Source of the DNA: Mobula birostris
Lineage: Eukaryota
Direction of reading: 5' to 3'
Assembly: GCF_030028105.1 (NCBI RefSeq)
Contig: NC_092378.1
Coordinates: forward strand, 8,574,762 to 8,638,761
DNA length: 64,000 nt
How positions within the stretch are numbered: position 1 is the stretch's first letter; each line of letters starts with the position of its first letter. Made by a program: the position numbers and the translations under genes. Below the pieces are notes generated by a model, which had not been told where the DNA came from, searched no databases, and saw only the letters and a program-made list of their open reading frames with translations. This document shows, in pieces, positions 9,291-63,912 of this stretch.

Positions 9291-9582
9291 TGCTATGCAT
9301 TACACGACCTATCCTCCCGAAAGGAAAATACCCACCGGTTCTCTATAATACTTAAATTCGACAATGGCACTCCACTGGGCAAACTACCTGCACCTCTTCG
9401 TTTCTAATAAACGTCCTTAAGTTTCCATTCCGATCTCACGCGGGTGCTTGACTATGACAAACGAGGTGATTCCGAAGGGAGGAGCCAGGATTGCTGTGAT
9501 TATGCTTGGTCAGCCAGCCCGGGGCCTGCTGGGCCTAACACCCGGCTCAGGGCGGGGTAAAGGCCAGGTTATGGAAGGATAC

Positions 9583-10057
9583 GTTTCCTGGGCGGAGAGT
9601 CTCTGCGGACATTGCTGCCGCTGTTGAAGTTGGGCCCGGGACCCGGCCCAAGTCTCCCTCCTCTCTTCCAGCCCCAAGGCCCCGGGCACTCCCTGCCCCA
9701 GCGGCCGCGGTTGGAGCCCTCCCGAAAGCGGAAGCGGCCGAAAGTTCCGTGACTCCTCTCCCAGAAGTTGGAGCGGGGCGAATCGCCGAGCAGAGCGGGC
9801 GGCGGCAGCAACGGCTGCCGTGCGAAGCCACGGTACGGTTCCTTGAGCCGGTAGGACAGGCCGTTGCCGGAGGACGGCGACTGAGTCGTGAGGCGAGAGC
9901 CGAGCCGGTGCTGTTTAGGCCCTGAGCCGCCAGGTCTCGGCCTCTGAGACACGAACCGCGAGTCCCGGTAGAAATTCTCGTCGTTGTCATCGTCTATCTC
10001 GCCGTCTTCCAGCTCCCCTTCTTCTTTGGGCGACAACTGCTCTCCGCCGAGTTCCAT
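9583..10057 (-). CDS. ZFC3H1: ZFC3H1 coding exon 1
   Basis: ATG in strong Kozak context (gacgccATGG, 10057-10055). MELGGEQLSPKEEGELEDGEIDDD...SYRLKEPYR...SPRSNFWERSH...RFRFR...DSPPRK matches the ZFC3H1 N-terminus (SPKEEGELEDGEI motif). Lies in a CpG island and ends at the GTATCCTT donor. Confidence 0.93.
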
Positions 10058-10059
10058 GG

Positions 10060-10190
10060 CGTCGCCTATCACCAGCACCGAGGGCCGGAGGCCGTCTCCG
10101 TCACCGAGGGTGGAAGCGGAACTGACGTCAGCCACGGCGGAGGCACAATGCGCGTTCTCGGCAAAACCGGAGAGCGCGCTCCAACTCTAT
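10060..10190 (-). promoter_or_regulatory. ZFC3H1 CpG-island promoter/5'UTR with palindromic CRE
   Basis: TGACGTCA at 10123-10130, adjacent GGAAGCGGAA ETS-like sequence, high CpG density. Confidence 0.6.
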
Positions 10191-36349: not shown

Positions 36350-36685
<336 letters not shown>

Positions 36686-39257
36686 TAAACCAAATATTTG
36701 AAAGAATATAAATTTGTGAAAGCCGAAAGAAAGAAAAAAATGATCCGTAGTGCCCTACCTGAACTGTAATTTTTGCAGAAATACAGACTCTGCAATATTA
36801 GGCCTTTTATCACAATATTTTGACATGAGCAATCAGTGCCTCATATAGGCAATTCCTTCTAACTAACCCAGTCACTTTTGACCTCTGTCTCATGTACATG
36901 GGCCCCTCCTCAGTTTTCCTCCTGCATACAGCAGCACCTCGTCCTCCTGTACATGCAGGTGTACTTTCTCACTCTTCAAGTATGCAGTCACACCCATCGT
37001 GCCCTTTTTTGAGCATAACCTTATCATGTAATCTCCTGTTGTCAACTCACCCCTTCCTAGCTAACCACTGGTAATCGCAACCTTCACCTCACCCACAGAG
37101 AACATGCAAGCACCCCTTTCCAAACAACACCCGCCAGTTAGGTCCCCCAACCCTGTGAGTGAGCCACTTCTGGAACCCACCTCCGAGTGCCCACCCTTTC
37201 CCAGGGCCGGGGAGGTTCTGCTGCTTCTGAGAACATACGTTTGCGTGGCTCCCTTCCCCTTGCCAGGCCCACTACCTTCCCACATACTAGTTCCCTGTCG
37301 TGACCCATGTCTGCATGTGTGAGCCCTAGCACCTCCAAACCTGCAATATGCACCCTTTCCCTTATTCTGCCAAATGCCACCCGACGCATCCTTTCCCCTC
37401 TGGCTATACCTGCCTGCCCACCCATGTAGTCCTTCTGAGACAGCGCGCCTGCCCCTGTCACTTGCCAGTCTTCTGTCCCCATATACCTGCCTCTCCTTAT
37501 AACACACACAAAATGCTGGAGGAAGTCTGCAGGCCAGGCACCATTTATGGAAAAAAGTGAACAGTTGATATTTCAAGCTGAGGCCCTTCATCAGACTCGC
37601 TCTACACCTGTGGTATTCCTTCCTGGAACTAACGTGAGCGGCAGACTCCTACCCATCTGTCTCCAGATCACATGCCGTCCTGGGACAGCCACCAACATGT
37701 TCTCAGCCTTTCCTGCCTCTACTTACACACCCTAAACAAGTGGCAGCCCATCCCTTCCCAGCAACCTGCCCACACACCACCAGTACAAGAACCTACTTGC
37801 CCGTCCCCTTTCAAGACCGCGCTTCTGATGTCCTTGCCCGCCCCCTTCTCCGATCCCGTGTCTGCGTGCCACTCATCCAGTACCCCCATCTACATTTACA
37901 CCAGTTACAAGGCCCCATTTCTTACTCCCCTACTTTCATATTGCACCCTCACTCTGACTTGCTCAATTTTACCGGTGTTTTCAGTTTTATTTCATATAGT
38001 TGTGTAAGATTTCATTCAAAATTAACAGTCTCAAAATGCTGGAGGAATTCAACACTCTATGCATGCAACAACCGGTTTCCTGTCAGCCCTCCATTAAAAG
38101 CCACCAGTTAACAGGAAGGAAATGGAGCAGCAGTATAAAAGGCAAACAGATTAAAAATTAAAGTATTAACAATGTGGGATTTCAATTATCCCATCTATGA
38201 GAATCAATGGGGCAGCGAAATTTTAATGTAAATTTTTTTAAAAAATCATACACTGTGCTCAGTTTCATTCAAAATTAACACACACAAAATATCGGAGGAA
38301 CTCAGCAGACCAGGCAGCATCTGTGGAAATTAATAATAAATAAATATTTCAGGCCAAGAATCCTGAAAAAGGGTCTCGGCCAGAAATGGCGACTTTTTTT
38401 TCTATCGATGCTGCTGAGTTCCTCCTCCAGCATTTTGTGTGTGGTGCTCTGGATTTCCAGCATCTGCAGACTTCCTCGTGGTTCTGTTGAATATTATATT
38501 GGATATGAGTTCATTTTTGGATGTTAGTGATACAAAAAATTTAAAAAGCACATCCCGATTTTAATATATTTACACTATTTTCTCTAAATATAAGCCTCTT
38601 TTGATATCCAATTATTTTGCTTAATGTGCATTACAAAATAGGTTTGTAAGACGAATCAATTATACAGCCTTATTTCACAAGCACAAGAAGTCCTTCATGA
38701 ATTTGAAACAGTCAAGAATTGTGGATTTGTAAAAATTTCAGTAAAGGATATTCAGTGTGTTGTGTCATGGACAGATATGATAGTTTATCAACTGTAGTGA
38801 TTTTTCCCCCCTCAACTTGAATTTTACTGTTTACTTACTTTAATAATTGTCCAACTTTTATTTGTTTTATAAAATATACCTCCTTCATTGCTTTGAAAAT
38901 AAACTATAAGTTTTACCACACTTTACATCATTTTTTTCTAGTTGTAATTTGGTAGGCTTCTAGTTGGAATTATCTGTAAGAATATGACCTAAAGAATGGA
39001 GACAAAGCTGAAATCTGGAATGATAATGCCTTGAGCCTGTTCATCCACTCAGCAAGTTGATAATTGCTGCTTGTCATGTGATCAGGTGTATCAATTTCAA
39101 TCTGGAACAGAATGACTCAACATTTCTTACTCAGCGACTGTCTGGAATAGAGAAAATCCAGTTGCCACAGCACACCCTACCAAGTTAATTTCAGTTATTT
39201 CACAATATTTATATGTAAGTAAAATTGCTAATGTTAATGTCCAAGGAAAGGAAATGA

Positions 39258-39653
<396 letters not shown>

Positions 39654-40576
39654 TGATGAAGGTCCTCCATCTCTGGCGATGTTTCTTCGTCTTGGCAGTA
39701 GCTTCCTCTCGGTTTTCAGTACTGTCAGTCACGCAAGTCCCAGATGGAGACTCAGAAATGCAGTTACATAGAACATAGAATAGTATAGCACAGTACTCAG
39801 TACACTCAGATGCAGAAACATTCTTCATGGCTGTTTCCATAACAGTTTTGTTTACCAGTCAGGGTTGTTCACCTTGAGCTGAACCCCCGAACCTGGGGGT
39901 CCAGTGAACCTCTCGTGTGCAAAGGCAGATTAACAAGAGTTTAGAGTTGATTGATAAATGATGCTATTGATAAAGTGGAAGCTCAATTCCTTAGTGACGG
40001 CACTATTCACTATTTGGGAGAAATTTACACCAATTAACTTGTCTTTTACCATTGCATGCACATTAATAAACTGTAGCTGTGGGACAAGGAATCATTCTAT
40101 TGAGACTGATGAAACCTTCCAACCAGTGCTGTGAATTCATAGCACACCTACATCAATACATTAATCTTCTTCTTGGGCCCCGTCCCTAGCTCCCAGTGGA
40201 GCATAGGCCATCGATAGCCTTCTGTCTCCATCATCCAAAGTAGATGGTATAGTTGGAGTTTATCAATGTTTCTGTAATTCATTGCATCCACTCACTGTAC
40301 AAGGGATTGGCCTCTACAGCTTCACCAGAGCCCTGTTGGCTGGCCTTATCCATTTCCACCTCTCACAACAGGGATGTGGCATTGGACTTTGAGAGGCTTA
40401 AATGCAGTCAGATCTGCCACAAATTCATAGTTAAATTTTCAAATTGTTGAAATTTAATGTATATATTTTGATACTTTGATAGAAGTAAAGGTTAAATACT
40501 AAATAGAAACACAGCTTATTTATCATCATCATAGCTTGGCGCACCAGGCAGCTTATTTGTAATAGTCACTGGTTAG

Positions 40577-40828
<252 letters not shown>

Positions 40829-47762: not shown

Positions 47763-47864
47763 GTTTCCAGCATTTTCTAGTTTTATTTCCACCATCAGTC
47801 ATGCTGCCTTACATTTGTATGCTGTGAGTTAACAAAGTCCGGAATATGAGGGTGGGAGAAATGA

Positions 47865-48170
47865 AGACGCGGAATTCAGCCGAACCGGCGACAGAGGCGG
47901 TCACCATGGAAACGGGAGGAGGGGGGCGGGACAGGGGTCGGCGCCCCATCCCCGCCCATTGGCGGTTAGCTTTTTGCCGCGCACCGTTCGGACTGTTTGT
48001 TGTCTTTTGAAGTGAGCACGGCAGTGGCCAATGGGACGCGGCGGAGCCGGTGACGACGGGAGGGCGAAACGAACGGCCGCAGAATTGGCAGCTGCAGTGG
48101 CCAATGGGACGCGGCGGAGCCGGTGACGAAGGGAGCGCGAAACGAACGGGCACAGAATTGGCAGTGGTAC
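47865..48170 (+). promoter_or_regulatory. CpG-island, cell-cycle-type promoter of the Spo12-like gene
   Basis: RFX X-box GTCACCATGGAAAC 47900-47913; GC boxes 47923-47930 and 47950-47957; CCAAT/ATTGG at 47958, 48028, 48084, 48101, 48157; E2F TTTGCCGC 47973-47980 and GCGCGAAA 48135-48142; CHR TTTGAA 48006-48011. Confidence 0.8.
48021..48166 (+). repeat. Tandem duplication, 2 x 73 bp, inside the promoter
   Basis: gcagtggccaatgggacgcggcggagccggtgacga...cagaattggcag starts at 48021 and again at 48094. Confidence 0.95.
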
Positions 48171-48210
48171 CGGTGAGAGAGGGAGAGCGCGGAGTGAAGG
48201 GGTTGCTTAG
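48167..48210 (+). other. Putative non-coding first exon of the Spo12-like gene (5' end uncertain)
   Basis: Consensus donor TAG|GTAAGT at 48210/48211, at the 3' edge of the CpG island. Confidence 0.7.
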
Positions 48211-50826
48211 GTAAGTGAAAATACCTTGCATGTGAAGCAGGTGAAATACTGCGGGTAATTACTGCCTGCAATTTCACAAAAAAAGGCTCTAAGTTGGTCC
48301 TGATGTTTGGAAGGTGATAAGTTGTTCTGCGACTTGCTGCTCCCGCTGTAAAAGTTCTTGGTGCAGATACTATTGTATTTTATTTAAAAATCCTGCAAGA
48401 GAATAAATCTCGAGGTACCATAAGGTGACATATACGTAATGCATTTACTTTTGACTTCCGCTGCTAAAACAGGTGCAATGTAAAAGCCTACAGTCCTCTC
48501 GTAGACCTGCAGCCAATTCCAGAGTTTATGCATTCTACCTTCATTTACATAACAACTAAAATAGTTTTTCCACTTAGGGGGTGTGTGACTTCAAGCGTTA
48601 ATGATTCATGTATGTGAGATGCTTGTATAATCATTTACAATGCTCTTGATAATTTATTTTGAAATTAACTGCTGTACTTTAAAACCCGAAGATGGATTCA
48701 GTGCACAAAAAAAACTAAGGGATGACTCGAAAGAGTAGAGCCAATTTGGTGATTTTTTTTTTGTTGACTGGAACTAAAACGGAATACTGGAAACACTCAA
48801 GGTCAGGCAGTCTTACTTTGATAGAATTAACATTTCAGGTCAAAGGTCCTTTATCAGATCTGAACTATCAACTTTTTTTTGCTTTCGAAAGATATTGCTT
48901 GACGCACTGTGTGTTTCCTGCAGTTGGCTGTTAATTCTGTTTTTATTTCAGCTTTCTGTTATCTGCAGTTTTCTTGGATGTTCTTTGTTAACCGTTTTCC
49001 ATCGAGGGTATGAATGAGACTGCTGCCTCGACAGTCAAATTCAATCCTAACCACTGGTGCTGTGTGGCGATGCGTGATCTCATGAATGTGTGGGCTTTCT
49101 CTGGGTGTGGTTTCTGCTAACATTCTGAAGATGTGGGTTGTTAGATAAATTAGGGCCACCGTAAATTACCCTTGGTTTGTAAGAGTGTAGTTGAATCTGG
49201 GGAGAGTTGGTTAAAGTAGGGGGAGAAATTTTTAAATGAAGTGAAATTAAAGTAGGATGTTCAGCTGTGATGGTATCAGGTTCCCTGTCTGCAAAACCTT
49301 AAACTCAAAAGATTTTAAGCCCTATCTGGTATAGATATCTATGGGCACCCTCACTCTAGAGGTTATACTGTATCCACCTACTCTTCCGGTACTAGCTTTC
49401 TTCCCTGTCTAGTCACTGCAGGGAAGGCTAGCTCTAAGTACCCACTGCTTGAGTGGAGGGTCACCCCTCCCGACGAAGGCAATATAGCCACCTAACAAGT
49501 ATTTTCAACAATGTTTATATTATTTTTATTGATACATGTGTAAATTTAGACATAGTTCTTAACACATTTAACACTCAGGATTTCTGTTTTGTGAAAGATT
49601 TGAGTCCCATAGGATTTACAAACTGCAAAGAATTTACAAACGGATACAATTATTACCAATTAAAAGAACATACCAATGAGTTGCAGTTGCGTGAGTCATC
49701 TGTTGCAGAAACTGAAGGTTGAGGAATGAATTCTGGTCTTTCTGTAATTCCCCTTATCATTCTGAACAGTCCCCAATGTTTTCTAATGTTTAGCCTGTTT
49801 TGCTACTAGATTACGTCATCTGCATGTGATGTTTTCCAGATACTTTTGCTGGGGCAAAGTAATGCTTATAGATAGTCTAAAAGCTTCTAGGGTCAATGGT
49901 GCAAATAATGTAGTTGTTCCCTGGTTTAATGTAAGCCATTTAACATTGGCCCATTGTCTTGTGTTTGGCTAAGGCACACAAGAATCCCACTTTGGAAACT
50001 TACTGGAATTAATTAAAATATTTATTTAGAAAGGCAATGATGAATTGGGGATAGTTGTGTCGACTTGCTAAGGAACTGCTGTGATTAACTAACTTTGTTG
50101 TTCCCAGCTGATGGCAAATTCACTGGGGACAGATATGCTAGCTATAGTCTATATTAAATTTGTCAAGGTTCCATATAGCAGCCTACTTTTTTTTTGTACA
50201 ATTGAACACATCATTAACAGTTAAACACTCAGCAATCTCTCTGGGAGGGGACAGAGATGGGCTGACTCCTCAACCTCGGGAGGGAGGACAATCTCATCTG
50301 GGCCGAAGTACTTCACACTCGATGACTGTGAGCCCCTTGGCCTCTCTGTTTAAGGTGCCATTTGGCCTCCCTAGTTGTCTACTGCCGCATTCCTCGATCT
50401 GGCAGGTGGTGAATGAATGAAAAGCCCACAATGATGGCAAGGGAGACACCACAGAAGAGAGCACCAGCCTTATGTTCCACATCCACCACAGGGTCTGCAG
50501 TTGTCGAACAGGTTGACCTTGCTCACGTGCCAGACACGTAGGCCGGGCTCTTGGGCTAATGAAGTGGCCTTCCTTGTGGAGGGAGTGTCCCAGGGACGGG
50601 AATTGTGTGGGATAATGGAGGGGCAGTGTGTTGGGGGAAGGAAACTAAAGAAGCTAAAATGTGGTTCTTTTTCCTTAGCTGATGTAGAGAGATTGTTTTG
50701 TATCATTTGTTTTCTATATTTATTGATATCTTCAAAGTTGTATTTATCTATAGATGCTTGTATCTAATAGTCAACCTTAAACAGATTTTTCTTTGTTTTT
50801 TTTTCCCTTTTCCTCAGATTTTTGAG

Positions 50827-50918
50827 ATGAACACAAACAAGGCCTTGACTAAACATAGTGACCCAAACCAGCAGCCACCAACTCCAAGTCTAATGAAGAG
50901 AAAACGAGCACAAGAAAA
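50827..50918 (+). CDS. Spo12-family small protein, coding exon 1 (exon starts at 50818)
   Basis: Long polypyrimidine acceptor ttttttttcccttttcctcAG|ATTTTTGAGATG; MNTNKALTKHSDPNQQPPTPSLMKRKRAQE(K); donor AA|GTAAGT, phase 2. Confidence 0.8.
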
Positions 50919-51000
50919 GTAAGTACTTTGGAAAAGAAGATAACTTGAATAGCCACACTTGGTGTTGTTTTGGTGTACTTAAATTGTTTTTCATGTCTAG

Positions 51001-51084
51001 GAAACTTTTCAGAAGCCCTACGGACAGCATGTTGTCACCATGCTCACAGAGGCTGATGAAACCAAAGCACGTCAATCCTACAGA
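51001..51084 (+). CDS. Spo12-family small protein, coding exon 2 carrying the Spo12 motif
   Basis: ttgtttttcatgtctAG|GAAACTTTTC...CCTACAGA|GTAAGT; 84 nt, phase 2-2; (K)KLFRSPTDSMLSPCSQRLMKPKHVNPT(E). Confidence 0.85.
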
Positions 51085-51354
51085 GTAAGTTTTATTATCT
51101 GCGGTTTTAATGCATCACCATTGTAAATCACAGTCACTTAATTACCTGTCCACATGTTAATTCAATACAATAAAGATGTTTTTCTAATAAACCTGCTTTC
51201 ATCACACCCCCTAAAATGGGGCTAGAGCATAATATCTGAAGAAACTGATGGGGGTAGCTTTTTTTTTTAAATTAAATAATTACGGGAATTTTTTTTAATA
51301 CAGCAATGTCACTTCGGTACAGATTGAGATACTATTAGTGGATAGTGGATACTA

Positions 51355-51830
51355 TTGAGAGAGAGGAGATTTACAAGGATATTGCCTGGATTGGAGAGTG
51401 TGCCTTATGAGAATAGGTTGAGTGAACATAGCCTTTTCTCCTTAGAGTGGCGGAGGATGAGAGGTGACCCGATAGAGGTGTATAAGATGATGAGAGGCAT
51501 CGCTCATGTGGATAGCCAGAGGCTTTTTCCCAGGGTTGAAATGGTTAACACAAGGGGACATAATTTAAAGTGCTTGGAAGTAGGTACAAGGGGGATGTCA
51601 GAGGTAAGTTTTTCACACAGAGTGGTGGGTGCATGGAATGCATTGCCAGCAAAGGTGATAGAGTGGATACAATAGGGTCTTTTAAGAGACTCTTGGATGA
51701 GTATATGGAGCTTAGAAAAATAGAGGGCTATGTGGTAGGGAAATTCTAGGCAGTTTCTAGAGTAGGTTACATGGTCGGCACAACATTGTGGGCTGAAGGG
51801 CCTGTAATGTGCTGTAGATTTCCATGTTCT
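51355..51830 (+). mobile_element. CR1-like LINE 3' end in an intron of the Spo12-like gene
   Basis: ORF RRFTRILPGLES..YENRL...EWRRMRGD.IEVYKMMRG. Confidence 0.88.
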
Positions 51831-52374
51831 CCAGAATTTTGAGTCTGACTTTCTTGTTTGTCATTTCTTTGTGATTTTGGCCTTGCAATAATTCCCATTT
51901 TCCTCATGTCACTTAAACATTAGCTGTTATTTGCAACTATCTGTTCCTGTTCCTCCCGTATTTGTATTTCATTCATCAACATGTACCAGTCTGACATTCG
52001 TACTTTGTTTTGCTCTCTCCAACATCTTTTGTTACTGTATTGTAATTAGAAATAACATGTTTAAGATAAAGTTCTTCATTCTTGGCTGCTTGATTAACAA
52101 AGTTTGCATATAGTTTAAAAAAGATACAGTTGCATATAGTTTTTAAAAAAAAGCTATATTCTCATGGACTTGATTTCCTAAAGACCCACTTGCTTTTGTT
52201 TTAAGGAAGTATCTTGGTAAAACTTATTTTGCCTCATTTTTCAGCAAGGTGCGGGAAGCAAAGTTTGCTGGCAAGCAGCAATGTACAATTCAGTCTAGTG
52301 TGCTATTAACCCAAAAATGAGCATAAACAATGTACCTGAAGAATTCTTCACTCTGATTAAGGACTTTCTCAGTA

Positions 52375-53132
52375 TAATGGACTCCGGTTAATTGGGACCA
52401 GTACATTTTGACCCAATTAATCTGCTGGCCCAATTAACTGAAGTTTCATGGAAATAGTTAAAAAGGAATAAACAAAAGATGAGCTACTATTTAACTGAGT
52501 AATAAATTATGTATTTAAATGAAATACAAATTAGAACACTACCAATACTATTAAGGTACGATAAAACTTAAATAGTTGCTAATAGTTATCGACGGAGGAA
52601 TTCATCCAGTGTTCACTGCTATTTTCTTTTGATTGCCTGTAAATGAACAAAATTAGTGCAGACACCTAGTTCAGATAATGGACGGTCTTCATACAAACTA
52701 TTGACAATTGTATCCTCCAAATCTTTAATTTCATTGTAACATCAAAGAAGATTATCGGTAACTTCAATTAATCGTAGGTCCTAACTTGTTACATTAGTGA
52801 AAGCATTTTCACTCCTGGCTGTCTCTGGCATCTTGAAATTATAGTGAGCAAAGCATTACTGAATTGTCTGAATTGCTTATCTCTTGCCAACTATCGGTGA
52901 CAAAAATCACTTTTTTGAACACAAATACATGCAATTGATGTTATTTATAAACTGTTTGTTTTAAGCGCGGTGTAGTGTCTAACAAGTGCATGCGATTGAT
53001 ACTAGATCGAAATTATTTGGCAACCGTCTCCTGTCCCAAATAAGTGGCATAGTGTCCCAAGTAAACAAAGGAAATCCCACCTATTTTCTCCATTAGTTTT
53101 TAAGGGTTGTTCCAAATAACCAAAATCTACTG
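52375..53132. mobile_element. Non-autonomous pogo/Tigger-like DNA transposon (MITE)
   Basis: Imperfect ~26 bp terminal inverted repeats (taatggactccggttaattgggacca / ttgttccaaataaccaaaatctactg), flanked by TA at 52373-52374 and 53133-53134. Confidence 0.7.
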
Positions 53133-53427
53133 TACATGTTTTAAATGCGGTTGATTTCTTGGGAAGTTCTAGTTCTATCAGAGAATTCTTGTGGTTTGTT
53201 GAGGAATTTTAGATCTTATTCCTATCTTCAGTAGTTTGGTAGGAAATGTGTCATTTCTGACTCACAATAGAAGCCAACTGAAAAATTTATTCATAAATAT
53301 GCAATTGGAATGGACACTTTGCCAATGTTAATCTTTTTCTGTTAAAACTGTCTAATTAGAATATCAAGTTGCTTGACAATGTAAATCTGGGTACACAAGT
53401 TACAACCTAATGTTTAATTGTCTACAG

Positions 53428-53536
53428 GTTTCAAAATGGCAAGATTACTGCACAACACGAATCAATTCTTGACGACAAAGAGAATAACTTCAGTACTCGG
53501 GAGCAGAGACTTTCTTTTGGAAGAAATGACAACTGA
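53428..53536 (+). CDS. Spo12-family small protein, last coding exon (KEN box, stop); total 94 aa
   Basis: ctaatgtttaattgtctacAG|GTTTCAA; (E)FQNGKITAQHESILDDKENNFSTREQRLSFGRNDN*; in frame with the preceding phase-2 exon. Confidence 0.72.
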
Positions 53537-53775
53537 TTTTTTTTTTGCGTGGTGGTGGGGAAGTGGAATATAATGTACAGTGACTTTAAGTGCTCTGTAC
53601 AGAGGAAGAATATATAAGCTCTATTCCCTTAATTTAAATTTCATGTGCACTTCTTTGGGACTATATACACTACTGATGTTTTAATTAGGTAAAAATTATT
53701 GTAAGATTATGGGATATAAATCTTACACTTTCACTTTGTCATACAATGTACAGGTTTTTTTTTGGATCATTCAAA

Positions 53776-53826
53776 AATAAAGGTCACTCTCTATCTGGTT
53801 TCCTCCTGTTTAAGAGCCTGAATAAA
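53776..53826 (+). terminator. Polyadenylation signals of the Spo12-like gene
   Basis: AATAAA at 53776-53781 and 53821-53826, with upstream UGUA motifs at 53574, 53596 and 53747. Confidence 0.6.
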
Positions 53827-54058
53827 AGAAATTAATACTTTAATCCTGCAATGGCAAGTGGAAAATATTTCAATATGAAGCTTGTATTTAATTCTTAAAA
53901 GATGTGAAGGGGCTTTACAGGAGTATGGGTGCTAAGTCAATTGATATGGGGGGAGGGGCCACTTCATGTACCATAAGAACTTCGGAGTCTTATTGACAGA
54001 TTAGGACATTAGGATTTGGTATAATGGGTGAGGTTTCTTTAGTTAAACCGTTAGACTT

Positions 54059-60879: not shown

Positions 60880-61159
60880 TGTAATGTATCAGGTGCAGGA
60901 TTAAAATGCTGCACATTCCGCGGCCCCGGAGAGACCCGCCTCTCGCCTGTCAATCAAATGACGTACACCAAAGGACTGACGCAGGAGGAAGGAGACGCCA
61001 TTAGACGAGGAGGGCGGCTTGTTTACTGTTCGTGCTCGACTGGGTGAGCCGGTGGCTTTCCCCCCAGTTGGTCTGCGCTTTCATTCCCTCCCCCCACATC
61101 CCACCCTGGTCCCATGTGATTGTGTCCGAGGCTCGCTTGGATTCATTTTCCTCCCGATA
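60880..61159 (+). promoter_or_regulatory. RAB21 promoter/5'UTR
   Basis: CpG-rich, with CRE-like TGACGTA and TGACGCA and a YY1-like CGCCATT just upstream of the ATG. Confidence 0.55.
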
Positions 61160-61288
61160 ATGGCGAGTGGCGGCAAAACCTACTCGTTTAAAGTTGTCCT
61201 GCTCGGGGAAGGCTGCGTGGGGAAGACATCACTGGTTCTGAGATACTGTGAGAACAAATTCAACGACAAGCACATCACTACGCTTCAG
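61160..61288 (+). CDS. RAB21: RAB21 GTPase exon 1 (remaining exons beyond the window)
   Basis: MASGGKTYSFKVVLLGEGCVGKTSLVLRYCENKFNDKHITTLQ (Rab21-type P-loop GEGCVGKT); donor CAG|GTTCGT; syntenic with TMEM19. Confidence 0.95.
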
Positions 61289-63912
61289 GTTCGTCCTTTG
61301 CTGTATGGTTCCTTCCCATCCCAACCCCCTTGCCAGCTTTGGATCACTGCCTGACGAAAGGGGAACTGACGATTAAGGCGCCTGCCAATCGAAGGCCTTT
61401 TGCTAAATGTCGCCCAGGAAAATGATCTTCAGTTTCTTCTTCTATCCTATAGCCTGAGATAGATTTAAATGTGATAAGCATGTTAGTTGTGTGTTCGCCG
61501 CAGTTCCATTAAAATCTACCAATACTGAGAAATACCAGAGCCGGGAAACGATAACCGCTGATTTGGATTACGGTTGATGTTTTGTGAGGAAGAATCCTCC
61601 CAAGAAGCATGTTTATCCCAAATGATATGTTGTCAAACTGGACTTTGGGATAGACGTCGTAATATAGTTTGGCCCTATATATTTGCCCCCAAAATTGTTC
61701 TTCCTGTATCAATTACGAATAATTGAGCGTTTATTGTAGCTGAATTTATAATTCGTTGTTTCATTGTACCTTTCAGAGAGGTTTAAAATTCAGTAAGTCA
61801 CTCAAACGGAGGGACTTGCATATTTAATCCTTAGTAAATGAGGGTGAGGCGACAAGTTCCGCAGGGAAGGTTTACATTTCATTCCCCTTCGCAGAATACT
61901 GTCTCTTTTGTCATTGGTGTTAATCGCTGCTTGAAAATAGTTAAGATATTCTTGCATCATTTTAGGTGACGAAGTGTATTTCACATGACTTTGAGTTATG
62001 TGATTTTGTAATCGTGTACTCGTTTCTGTGAATTGTTTGACACTAACTTAAAATATATGAATAATATTAAAATATTGAGGTGGAAACTTTGCTAGGTTTT
62101 ACAAATGAATCCATTGTTGTACTGGTTATTGTTCTACACTTAATATTGCAAATCATTGTTTTGAAACAATCATCTGCAAATATTGATTGTTTCAAAACAG
62201 ATGCAGTCTAGAATAACTGCCAGTGCATCACAATCAGGTTTAATATCACTAGCATGTGTCATGAAATTTGTCAACTTTTGTGGTAGCACTGCAAAAGAGA
62301 GAAAAAGAAAATTGTGGATTACAATAAAATATATAGTATAATAAATTAAGTAGTGCAAAAATATAGGAAATGAAAGAAGTAGTGAGGTAGTGTTCATGTG
62401 ATGAATATCCATTCAGAAATTGGATGAAAGTTAGAAAGTTCTGATAAAGGGTCTTAGCCCAAAATGTTACTGTTCACTTCCCTCCAAGGATACTGCTGGA
62501 CCTGCTAAATTGCTCCAAAATTTTGTGTGTTGCAAAAGTTAGTGGTTGAGATATACAGCACAGAAACAGGCCCTTTGGCCCATCTAGTCCATGCTGAAAT
62601 CATTTAAATTGCCTCCTCCCATCAACCTGCACTGGGACCGTAGCCTTCCGTCCATGTACCTATCCAAACTTAACTGATAAAATCGAGCTTGCATGCACCA
62701 CTTTTGTTGGCAGTTCATTTCACACTCTTACAATCCTCTTAGTGAAACTGAGTTGCAAATTGAGTTTTTTAACACTCTTTTGGCATCAGTCAAGTTCACT
62801 TCAGACACTGCTGACATTGAATAAAATCAAAATATTAATGAGTCTTAAATGTCACTTCTAGGTTAGTATTTGTTCTTCATCCCAAATAGTCAAATGAATG
62901 ACTATTGTAAAGGATAGCGAACAATCAACTATAACAGCATTGTAGAAAGAGAAACAGATGTTTTGTTTTGCAGCATAGATCTGACACAAGGTCTTTGACC
63001 TGAAGCATTCTCTTTCCTTGGATGCTGCTTAACCTTCTGAGTGTTTCCAGCATTTTCTGCTTCTATTTTGGATTTCCAGCATCTGTAGTTTGGTATGATT
63101 TTGATTAAGAAGCAACCATATTGAAGGAATAGGAATGTATAATAGGCCATGCTGCACAAGGATGGTGGAATTTCTTAATGAAGCAGATTAGTTTTTATAA
63201 TAATCCATTCATTTTGTAGTCATTGTTAACACAAGGTGATGAATTTTAATTACTCATATTTGAATCCCCAGTTGCTACAGTGGGATTCTAACTTTGTCTT
63301 GAGGTGAATGCTAATCCAATAGATTAACTGCAGTGTTATGACGTTTCCTTGTAAATTTGAAATGCATAGCCTGTTTCAGCAGCCAATATTTGGTTGATCA
63401 TTCAATTGTGATACTTACTTTAGCCCATCACCCCTACTGGGGCACAGGCCGTCAACAGCAGCTTGCCAGAGTCCTCTGTCCTGGGCCAGTCTTTCATGTC
63501 GTCCCCAGGTGTGGCCCATTCAATATCCTTCCTCTCCCAGGGATGAGGTGTTTGGAGCTTCTGTTGGCATTTCTGTAGCACTTGGTTTTTATGGGATGTA
63601 GTTGCTAGCCCCATGCCCGACTCCATTACAGCTGGGCTTGGGACTATCCATAGCAGTTATTCAATTGTGATGCTAAAGCTAAAAGTTTCTGTTCTCTTTT
63701 GCTGATAACTTGTACAATGATTCGTTGGCAAATTAATTTGGGTTCTGCAGGTGTAGATTATAACCTTTTAAAATACTGCATCGTAATAGTTTTGTATAGT
63801 ACAAGTAAATGTACAGAAATTAAGTTGACTAAATGCCACACTTGTTTGCAACCAATTAATATTTGCTAATCGTTTTTCAAAGTTTCAAAGTCAATTTATT
63901 ATCAAAGTACAA

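Follow-up and report, generated by a model that had tools for sequence, protein, structure and literature searches.

The window described here is a stretch of 64,000 nucleotides from Mobula birostris (NCBI RefSeq assembly GCF_030028105.1, contig NC_092378.1, forward-strand positions 8,574,762 to 8,638,761), and positions are counted from its first letter. It holds a gene of the Spo12 family with four exons on the plus strand, located between a DUF92/TMEM19-type gene and the first exon of a Ras-family gene. The original prediction, made from the letters of this stretch, placed a four-exon gene of 94 amino acids between TMEM19 and RAB21; the reading frame, the exon joints and the DUF92 and Ras-family neighbours agree with it. 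The mRNA has four exons, a length of about 0.7-0.8 kb and its own CpG/CCAAT promoter. That the gene is real and also belongs to the Spo12 family is, in our estimation, highly probable.

Gene structure, transcripts and promoter

The coding sequence comprises 285 nucleotides, or 94 codons and a stop, beginning with the ATG at 50827. From that ATG, exon 2 contributes 30 codons and two bases up to its phase-2 end at 50918. Exon 3, read in phase with it, gives a peptide containing K-L-F-R-SPTD-S-M-L-SPC-S-Q-R-L, and the TGA stop lies in exon 4 at 53534-53536. The introns measure 2607, 82 and 2343 nucleotides. All three donors read GTAAGT, and all three acceptors are AG behind pyrimidine-rich tracts.

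Sequencing runs were searched by the last exon (53428-53850), which returned 22 runs from eight studies; 18 are marked 'RNA?' as a guess and none is recorded as RNA. Contigs from four of the 22 runs, belonging to three studies, were aligned to 48000-53900: X1 and X3 (organism A), X5 (organism B) and X19 (organism H). These are assembled contigs, so depth counts contigs and gives no information on expression level, tissue, strand or exact ends. The predicted splice joins were seen as GT..AG joints in the contigs. Joints 50918>51001 and 51084>53428 occur in all four runs, and joint 48208>50816, which becomes the predicted 48210>50818 when the cut is moved by two letters, occurs in three (absent from X5). 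The 687-nucleotide contig of X1 covers 48100-48208, 50816-50918, 51001-51084 and 53428-53818 without a differing letter, and the 563-nucleotide contig of X3 likewise has none relative to the window. Exon 1 reaches upstream at least to 48100, beyond its predicted start at 48167. A separate low-depth contig of 103 nucleotides spans 48027-48129. Depth was zero in all four runs for seven of 30 bins, all of them unique intron sequence, while the exons were covered; thus, the material is processed RNA and not genomic DNA.

Contigs of X5 and X19 show few differences from the window, which points to close relatives or other populations as their source. In the coding sequence of organism H, the difference at 51052 is synonymous, those at 53466 and 53492 are non-synonymous as the frame is read here, and one more lies in exon 2. 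Its part of the 3' untranslated region (UTR) carries six substitutions and five gaps. Taken together, these differences are too few to judge selection. The 3' UTR in exon 4 holds AATAAA at 53776 and 53821. Contigs end at 53765, 53818, 53832 and 53842, although a contig end is no proof of a poly(A) site.

Two upstream ATGs, at 48031 and 48104, lie inside the longest 5' extent seen. The first opens an upstream open reading frame (ORF) of 31 codons (48031-48126, stop 48124-48126). The second opens one of 39 codons (48104-48210 joined to 50818-50830) that spans intron 1 and whose stop, at 50828-50830, overlaps the main ATG as ATGA. The main contig of X1 begins 4 nucleotides before ATG 48104. Within intron 1, the bin 49576-49772 has a contig depth of 39 (X1), 11 (X3) and 1 (X5), with adjacent bins near zero. 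By eye, a piece of 139 nucleotides (49579-49717) would be bounded by AG (49577-49578) and GT (49718-49719); it is joined to nothing among the joint rows listed. This piece could be an alternative 5' UTR exon or a repeat. Intron 3 contains interspersed repeats at 51349-51939 and 52334-53121, where numerous diverged contigs, present in each of the four runs, add up to depths as high as about 100,000. An ORF there, at 51355-51675, bears a ...SLE.RR.RGD.IEVYK... tail common to many other ORFs of the window.

The original prediction also gave the gene its own CpG promoter, a non-coding first exon and AATAAA signals, and each of these was found: the CpG-rich stretch at 47800-48300, the exon 1 contig and the two signals in exon 4. 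The ratio of CpG observed to expected is 1.0-1.3 in 200-nucleotide windows over 47800-48299 vs 0.16-0.66 across most of the flanks. Five CCAAT boxes stand within about 200 nucleotides (47958 minus, 48028 plus, 48084 minus, 48101 plus and 48157 minus), compared with a rate of 2.06 per kb in the whole window. Four of the boxes derive from a tandem duplication and are thus not independent. A scan of the promoter gave one TTTGAA at 48006 and, on the minus strand, one TTTCGCGC at 48135; a TATA box is absent from 47800..48300. A CpG/CCAAT layout without a TATA box resembles the promoters of cell-cycle genes. With regard to an RFX X-box, the simple promoter scan gave a single half-site-like GTTGCT, at 48202. 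Coordinates of the features are collected in Table 1.

Table 1. Features of the Spo12-family locus in the window
Feature	Coordinates	Strand	Basis
CpG-island promoter	47800..48300		GC 0.54-0.65, CpG observed/expected 1.0-1.3
Tandem duplication, 71-nucleotide unit, one forward and one reverse CCAAT per copy	48021..48164	+	2 copies, 94% identical, 73 nucleotides start to start
Exon 1, non-coding, minimum extent	48100..48210	+	X1 contig, GT..AG joint to exon 2
Exon 2: start codon 50827, N-terminal 30 residues and 2 nucleotides, Thr-Pro (TP) site, KRK motif	50818..50918	+	translation, transcript joints
Exon 3: Spo12 box F-x-SPTD-x3-SPC-S-x-R-L, S36/S43	51001..51084	+	PF05032 match, translation, joints in 4/4 runs
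Exon 4: last 35 codons, DKEN and RLSF, stop 53534-53536, 3' UTR	53428..53842	+	translation, contigs, motif scan

The neighbours frame the gene on both sides. Upstream, on the same strand, three ORF pieces at 36356-40825 match Pfam DUF92 at profile positions 72-251 of 251. Downstream, Pfam identifies a Ras-family first exon at 61019-61351, which is probably that of RAB21, judging by the N-terminus of that protein. Farther away, a minus-strand ORF of 188 amino acids (9569-10135) is rich in acidic residues and serine, adjoins a CpG-rich stretch and has no Pfam match at E<=0.01. It may be the initial exon of ZFC3H1, a gene that usually lies beside TMEM19.

Family membership and distribution among animals

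The window model was searched exon by exon, and the bamboo-shark orthologue P0001, introduced below, was used instead for the fold and for several searches. The match to a Spo12 hidden Markov model that had been foreseen was obtained from exon 3 alone, whose 27-residue peptide scores 30 bits against Pfam PF05032 (E 4.8e-7; curated cutoff 20.5). The evidence from splicing does not depend on this match. The peptides of exon 2 and exon 4, each searched alone, have no Pfam match at E<=10. P0001 matches PF05032 at 29.7 bits. Its hmmscan at E<=10 returned Spo12, a sub-threshold C5orf34-like_N and nothing else, hence no relation to ENSA/ARPP19 or FAM122A/PABIR within a search whose filters discard the majority of matches with E higher than about 0.1. 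All nine homologues in the vertebrate-plus-outgroup alignment match PF05032.

The relationship to the fungal proteins is recovered without the Pfam model as well. A profile built from animal sequences only finds a Lachancea protein with a Spo12 domain at E 2.9e-3 in 5.8 billion proteins, and BLASTP of shark against yeast gives 13 identical residues of 16 across the Spo12 box. The nearest clusters in the ESM-Atlas are two Ascomycota Spo12 clusters, with scores of 0.91 and 0.90. A Streptophyta cluster of 138 proteins, 59% of them with PF05032, scores 0.88, which is below the 0.9 line and serves as a lead only; Spo12-box proteins may exist in plants as well. A profile search of the PDB for solved structures of Spo12 relatives gave a best E of 1.3.

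A search with the open stretch around exon 3 returned a single protein, the hypothetical chiPu_0000836 (P0001) of Chiloscyllium punctatum, which has 92 amino acids and a precomputed PF05032 assignment. The window peptides of exons 2, 3 and 4 are 90%, 85% and 55% identical to it. Its sequence runs through the same three coding exons, and thus a gene model made independently has these joins too. Exhaustive phmmer of 1.84 billion representatives gave 12 matches at E<=0.001, ten of them with the Spo12 box. The two others, P0006 (622 amino acids) and P0007 (635 amino acids), are repeat proteins without the box and were left out of all alignments. The phmmer clusters come from the sturgeons Acipenser oxyrinchus and Huso huso, the frog Pelobates cultripes and the mite Medioppia subpectinata, and they are labelled 'hypothetical', 'hypothetical predicted' or 'unnamed'. 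Among 4130 candidates, 35 were matched by a profile of 11 animal sequences, and 28 of these 35 have PF05032 precomputed; the profile added scyTo_0000167 of Scyliorhinus torazame (PF05032 precomputed) and the mites Oppia nitens and Halotydeus destructor. This word-indexed search is not exhaustive, as it missed the known sturgeon proteins P0002 and P0014. Searching with a frog protein brought in Ascaphus truei and Anomaloglossus baeobatrachus, and Spo12 homologues also occur on many unnamed contigs. The named vertebrate proteins in these searches, from eight species, are all 'hypothetical', 'hypothetical predicted' or 'uncharacterized', so standard annotation seems often to miss this gene of 94 codons.

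These results change the picture of a jawed-vertebrate Spo12 homologue kept in cartilaginous fish. The homologue stands, by its PF05032 match; its restriction to cartilaginous fish does not, given that sturgeons, frogs and mites have the gene. Nor was it wholly unrecognised, because hypothetical proteins with PF05032 had already been predicted in C. punctatum and S. torazame. The family is known and curated, and the new part seems to be the recognition. Full-text literature searches found no paper in which an animal Spo12 is described or named, although the Extended Data or supplements of a recent preprint on Spo12 (10.1101/2025.10.28.685054) may list wider homologues. One apparent vertebrate Spo12 paper (PMC5473564) was rejected: 'SPO12H' there denotes a sample, namely schistosomula that had spent 12 h in portal serum. 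In the preprint, the terms metazoa, animal, human, vertebrate and fungi occur zero times and no animal homologue is named. Its authors suspect a wider family, consider homologues in complex eukaryotes hard to identify by sequence and propose FAM122A as a possible analogue (10.1101/2025.10.28.685054).

The anatomy of the protein has been kept across these lineages. SPTD and the second Ser-Pro (SP) are invariant in all 38 aligned sequences, and P20, K24, R25, C45 and L49 are conserved in at least 90% of them. As for the box exon, which the original prediction required to be intact, SPTD..SPC is kept in seven other vertebrate proteins. All seven share an N-terminal block whose last residues are Q-Q-(L)-P-x-T-P, then K-R-K, F-[RK]-SPTD-x3-SPC and a C-terminal KEN, and the window protein has every one of these. 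The shark, sturgeon and frog proteins agree in frame, length and motifs and are 44-89% identical to that of the bamboo shark. In the window, the KEN is part of D-K-E-N in exon 4, and the C-terminal region has a low predicted local distance difference test score (pLDDT) in the model of P0001. That AlphaFold2 model, from the 38-row alignment, has a mean pLDDT of 63.9 and is mostly low-confidence coil. Its only helices (residues 20-30 and 44-57) lie around the box, and confidence is best over residues 21-50. By the model of its orthologue, the window protein, with 94 residues, is predicted to be mostly disordered.

Several homologous models differ at their ends. Two proteins of P. cultripes, P0003 and P0004, have their first 58 residues in common and then diverge: one ends with a KEN box, and the other has 99 amino acids, no KEN and no precomputed PF05032. 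The difference may represent an alternative last exon that escapes KEN-dependent turnover. The S. torazame model (P0017) begins 24 residues ahead of the ATG that the other six vertebrate models use. A similar open frame is present in the window, where the ORF 50698-50922 runs from the intron into exon 2, and the extension is probably an annotation artefact. The invertebrate sequences carry two more N-terminal blocks, approximately L-P-K-Y-L-L-T-K-G-R and P-R-D-x-x-N, neither of which falls within the Pfam Spo12 model as judged by matched positions. The vertebrate N-terminal K-A-L-T-K may be a remnant of the first.

The conservation described above bears directly on whether the transcript is non-coding or its ORF untranslated, with the resemblance to Spo12 arising by chance or convergence. 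The ORF is short, two ATGs precede it and RefSeq-style named orthologues are almost absent, all of which would suit such a transcript. Against this stand the frame, length and motifs kept from sharks to frogs, the E values of the Pfam match and of the database-wide match to yeast, and the main contig itself, whose beginning at 48100 leaves the second upstream ATG 4 nucleotides from its end. There is, in our judgement, very little chance that this explanation is correct.

A possible inhibitor of PP2A-B55

The literature cited here deals with Spo12 as a protein of yeasts. Its biochemical role was called elusive until the 2025 preprint (10.1101/2025.10.28.685054), in which Schizosaccharomyces pombe Spo12 is described as a protein of 90 amino acids with S47 and S54 seven residues apart. 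TurboID labelling in S. pombe identified B55/Pab1 as the sole partner specific to the wild type over S54A, the overexpression phenotype requires pab1, and the genetic interactions with igo1 agree (10.1101/2025.10.28.685054). In AlphaFold3 models for both yeasts, the second phosphoserine contacts a basic patch, and the first serine occupies the PP2A active site. The authors regard Spo12 as the founder of a class of stoichiometric PP2A inhibitors that is new and regulated by Cdk1, and they predict the S. pombe protein to be disordered, with two short helices next to the box (10.1101/2025.10.28.685054). In budding yeast, S118 and S125 of Spo12 are sites of cyclin-dependent kinase (CDK) required for timely Cdc14 release, and its LxF motif recruits Clb2-Cdk1 (PMC6620034). 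Spo12 is among the known substrates of the anaphase-promoting complex (APC; PMC3128521), and cdc55 mutations have been reported to suppress the spore inviability of spo11 spo12 (bioRxiv 10.64898/2026.04.17.719180).

The Spo12 box of the window protein contains two minimal CDK sites, S36-P and S43-P, also 7 residues apart. By analogy with the yeast proteins, the window protein could be a proliferation-linked, CDK-switched inhibitor of PP2A-B55 that is destroyed through its KEN box, a claim that we place a little short of even odds. Mitotic CDK1 would phosphorylate S36 and S43, and the phosphorylated box would dock in PP2A, between its catalytic subunit and the regulatory subunit B55, and inhibit the enzyme stoichiometrically. 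The block of PP2A-B55 would reinforce the phosphorylation of CDK substrates in M phase and so form a direct positive feedback. At mitotic exit and in G1, the APC/C (APC/cyclosome) bound to Cdh1 would remove the protein via the KEN box. A promoter of the CCAAT/E2F/CHR (cell cycle genes homology region) type would limit expression to dividing cells, germline or embryo. The TP site, which is conserved and lies 17 residues upstream, might serve for priming. Taken together with the reality of the gene and its family membership, this is the explanation that we consider the best of those weighed here, with a probability of roughly 0.55.

Several points weigh against it. The PP2A-B55 mechanism rests on one yeast preprint and in part on predicted complexes. 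Loss of spo12 in S. pombe had no visible phenotype in wild-type batch culture (10.1101/2025.10.28.685054). The PF05032 match of the window protein spans only profile positions 2-19 of 35, and the yeast LxF dock is not clearly kept in it. None of the homology searches returned a teleost, amniote or lamprey protein, which may reflect loss and dispensability or missed annotation; short genes are often unannotated and the profile search missed sturgeons, so this lack of matches is no evidence of absence.

The dock deserves a closer description. Invertebrate homologues have K-[LF]-[ND]-L downstream of the box, aligned with P-T-K-L-N-F of the Lachancea protein, which in turn agrees with the LxF mitotic-cyclin docking motif of budding-yeast Spo12. 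In the column aligned to the yeast LxF, sturgeons read P-K-F-T-V, two sharks H-E-F-S-[IF] and the window H-E-S-I-L. Elsewhere, the window has R-L-S-F, with an L-x-F core and a preceding basic residue, 44 residues after S43, where the yeast optimum is 20-40. It agrees with one of three flanking preferences, two being asked by the published search rule (PMC6620034). R-L-S-F occurs in sharks only, sturgeons and frogs lacking it, and is at most a candidate dock that is not conserved more widely. An RxL-type dock at K-K-L-F is not kept, the bamboo shark having KKFF, sturgeons NVF/KVF and frogs NTF/NVF.

The box is equally that of the FEAR (Cdc14 early anaphase release) network, and the window protein could instead act on Cdc14A/B, for instance by displacing a nucleolar anchor, in the manner of budding-yeast Spo12 with Fob1 and Net1, and driving mitotic exit or the transition from meiosis I to II. 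The spacing of its serines equals that of the budding-yeast sites needed for Cdc14 release, and a review reports that Spo12 binds Fob1 (PMC11641746). However, S. pombe Spo12 does not control the localisation of Clp1, the Cdc14 homologue, and the preprint attributes the FEAR role itself to inhibition of PP2A-Cdc55 (10.1101/2025.10.28.685054). Nothing in the window bears on Cdc14. Animals are not known to have evident homologues of Net1 or Fob1, which also counts against such a role. By analogy with the findings of the 2025 preprint, the Spo12/Cdc14 module that the original prediction had in mind appears less likely than PP2A-B55 inhibition, and we regard it as improbable.

A stronger competitor holds that the protein is a conserved CDK substrate whose box is a phospho-dependent motif for some other partner (Cks, Pin1, a Polo-box or a chromatin protein), so that the yeast mechanism would not transfer. 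About half of the Pfam profile is matched, and the animal proteins have blocks that are lacking in the sole yeast sequence aligned, namely the TP site and, in invertebrates, the LLTKGR-like and PRD-x-N blocks. Basic residues flanking the CDK sites fit the signal of PP2A-B55 substrates, which speaks against a different partner. So do the PP2A contacts in the yeast models as far as described, as the two SP serines and the following helix correspond to invariant animal residues. We consider another partner unlikely, if clearly less so than the FEAR role.

If the window protein is an inhibitor of PP2A-B55, its distribution suggests a broader view. Animals may ancestrally own a Cdk1-switched PP2A-B55 inhibitor of the Spo12 type, a third class beside ENSA/ARPP19 and FAM122A, which survives in sharks, sturgeons, frogs and mites, and which amniotes and teleosts may have lost or let diverge past recognition. 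We offer this view tentatively and lean somewhat against it. Were it true, an animal Spo12-type inhibitor could be found by plain sequence search and tested in frog or shark material, the frog orthologues representing a tractable animal for testing the mechanism. If the mechanism transfers, the Cdk1/PP2A-B55 switch of at least some vertebrates would have one direct feedback arm beyond those in current models, and the presence or absence of the protein in amniotes would become a sharp evolutionary question.

Comparison with known systems

The closest described counterpart is S. pombe Spo12. The two proteins are of similar size (90 and 94 amino acids), and both carry two CDK serines exactly 7 residues apart. 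Both are also predicted to be disordered, with a pair of short helices beside the box, the window side of this comparison being the model of P0001. Unlike S. pombe Spo12, the animal proteins add the TP site and the vertebrate proteins add a C-terminal KEN, differences drawn from a comparison via Pfam and one Lachancea protein.

With Spo12 of Saccharomyces cerevisiae and its FEAR network (PMC6620034, citing Tomson 2009), the window protein shares the double-SP box, and by sequence logic both are CDK substrates. Spo12 of budding yeast is a substrate of the APC (PMC3128521), and a KEN box is present in the vertebrate proteins. The LxF docking motif of the yeast protein lies 20-40 residues from the sites as described, whereas the window has only a weak, shark-specific R-L-S-F 44 residues after S43. 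We know of no Cdc14/Net1/Fob1 context for animals.

The proteins chiPu_0000836 and scyTo_0000167 are orthologues with the same exon joins in other species, for which we found neither a name, a function nor a paper. ENSA/ARPP19 (Igo1) and FAM122A/PABIR1 would resemble the window protein in the proposed mode of action, as small disordered proteins in the groove between B55 and the catalytic subunit, an analogy taken from the preprint (10.1101/2025.10.28.685054). Within that likeness the route of activation differs, for ENSA/ARPP19 is activated by Greatwall and Spo12 directly by Cdk1 (10.1101/2025.10.28.685054).

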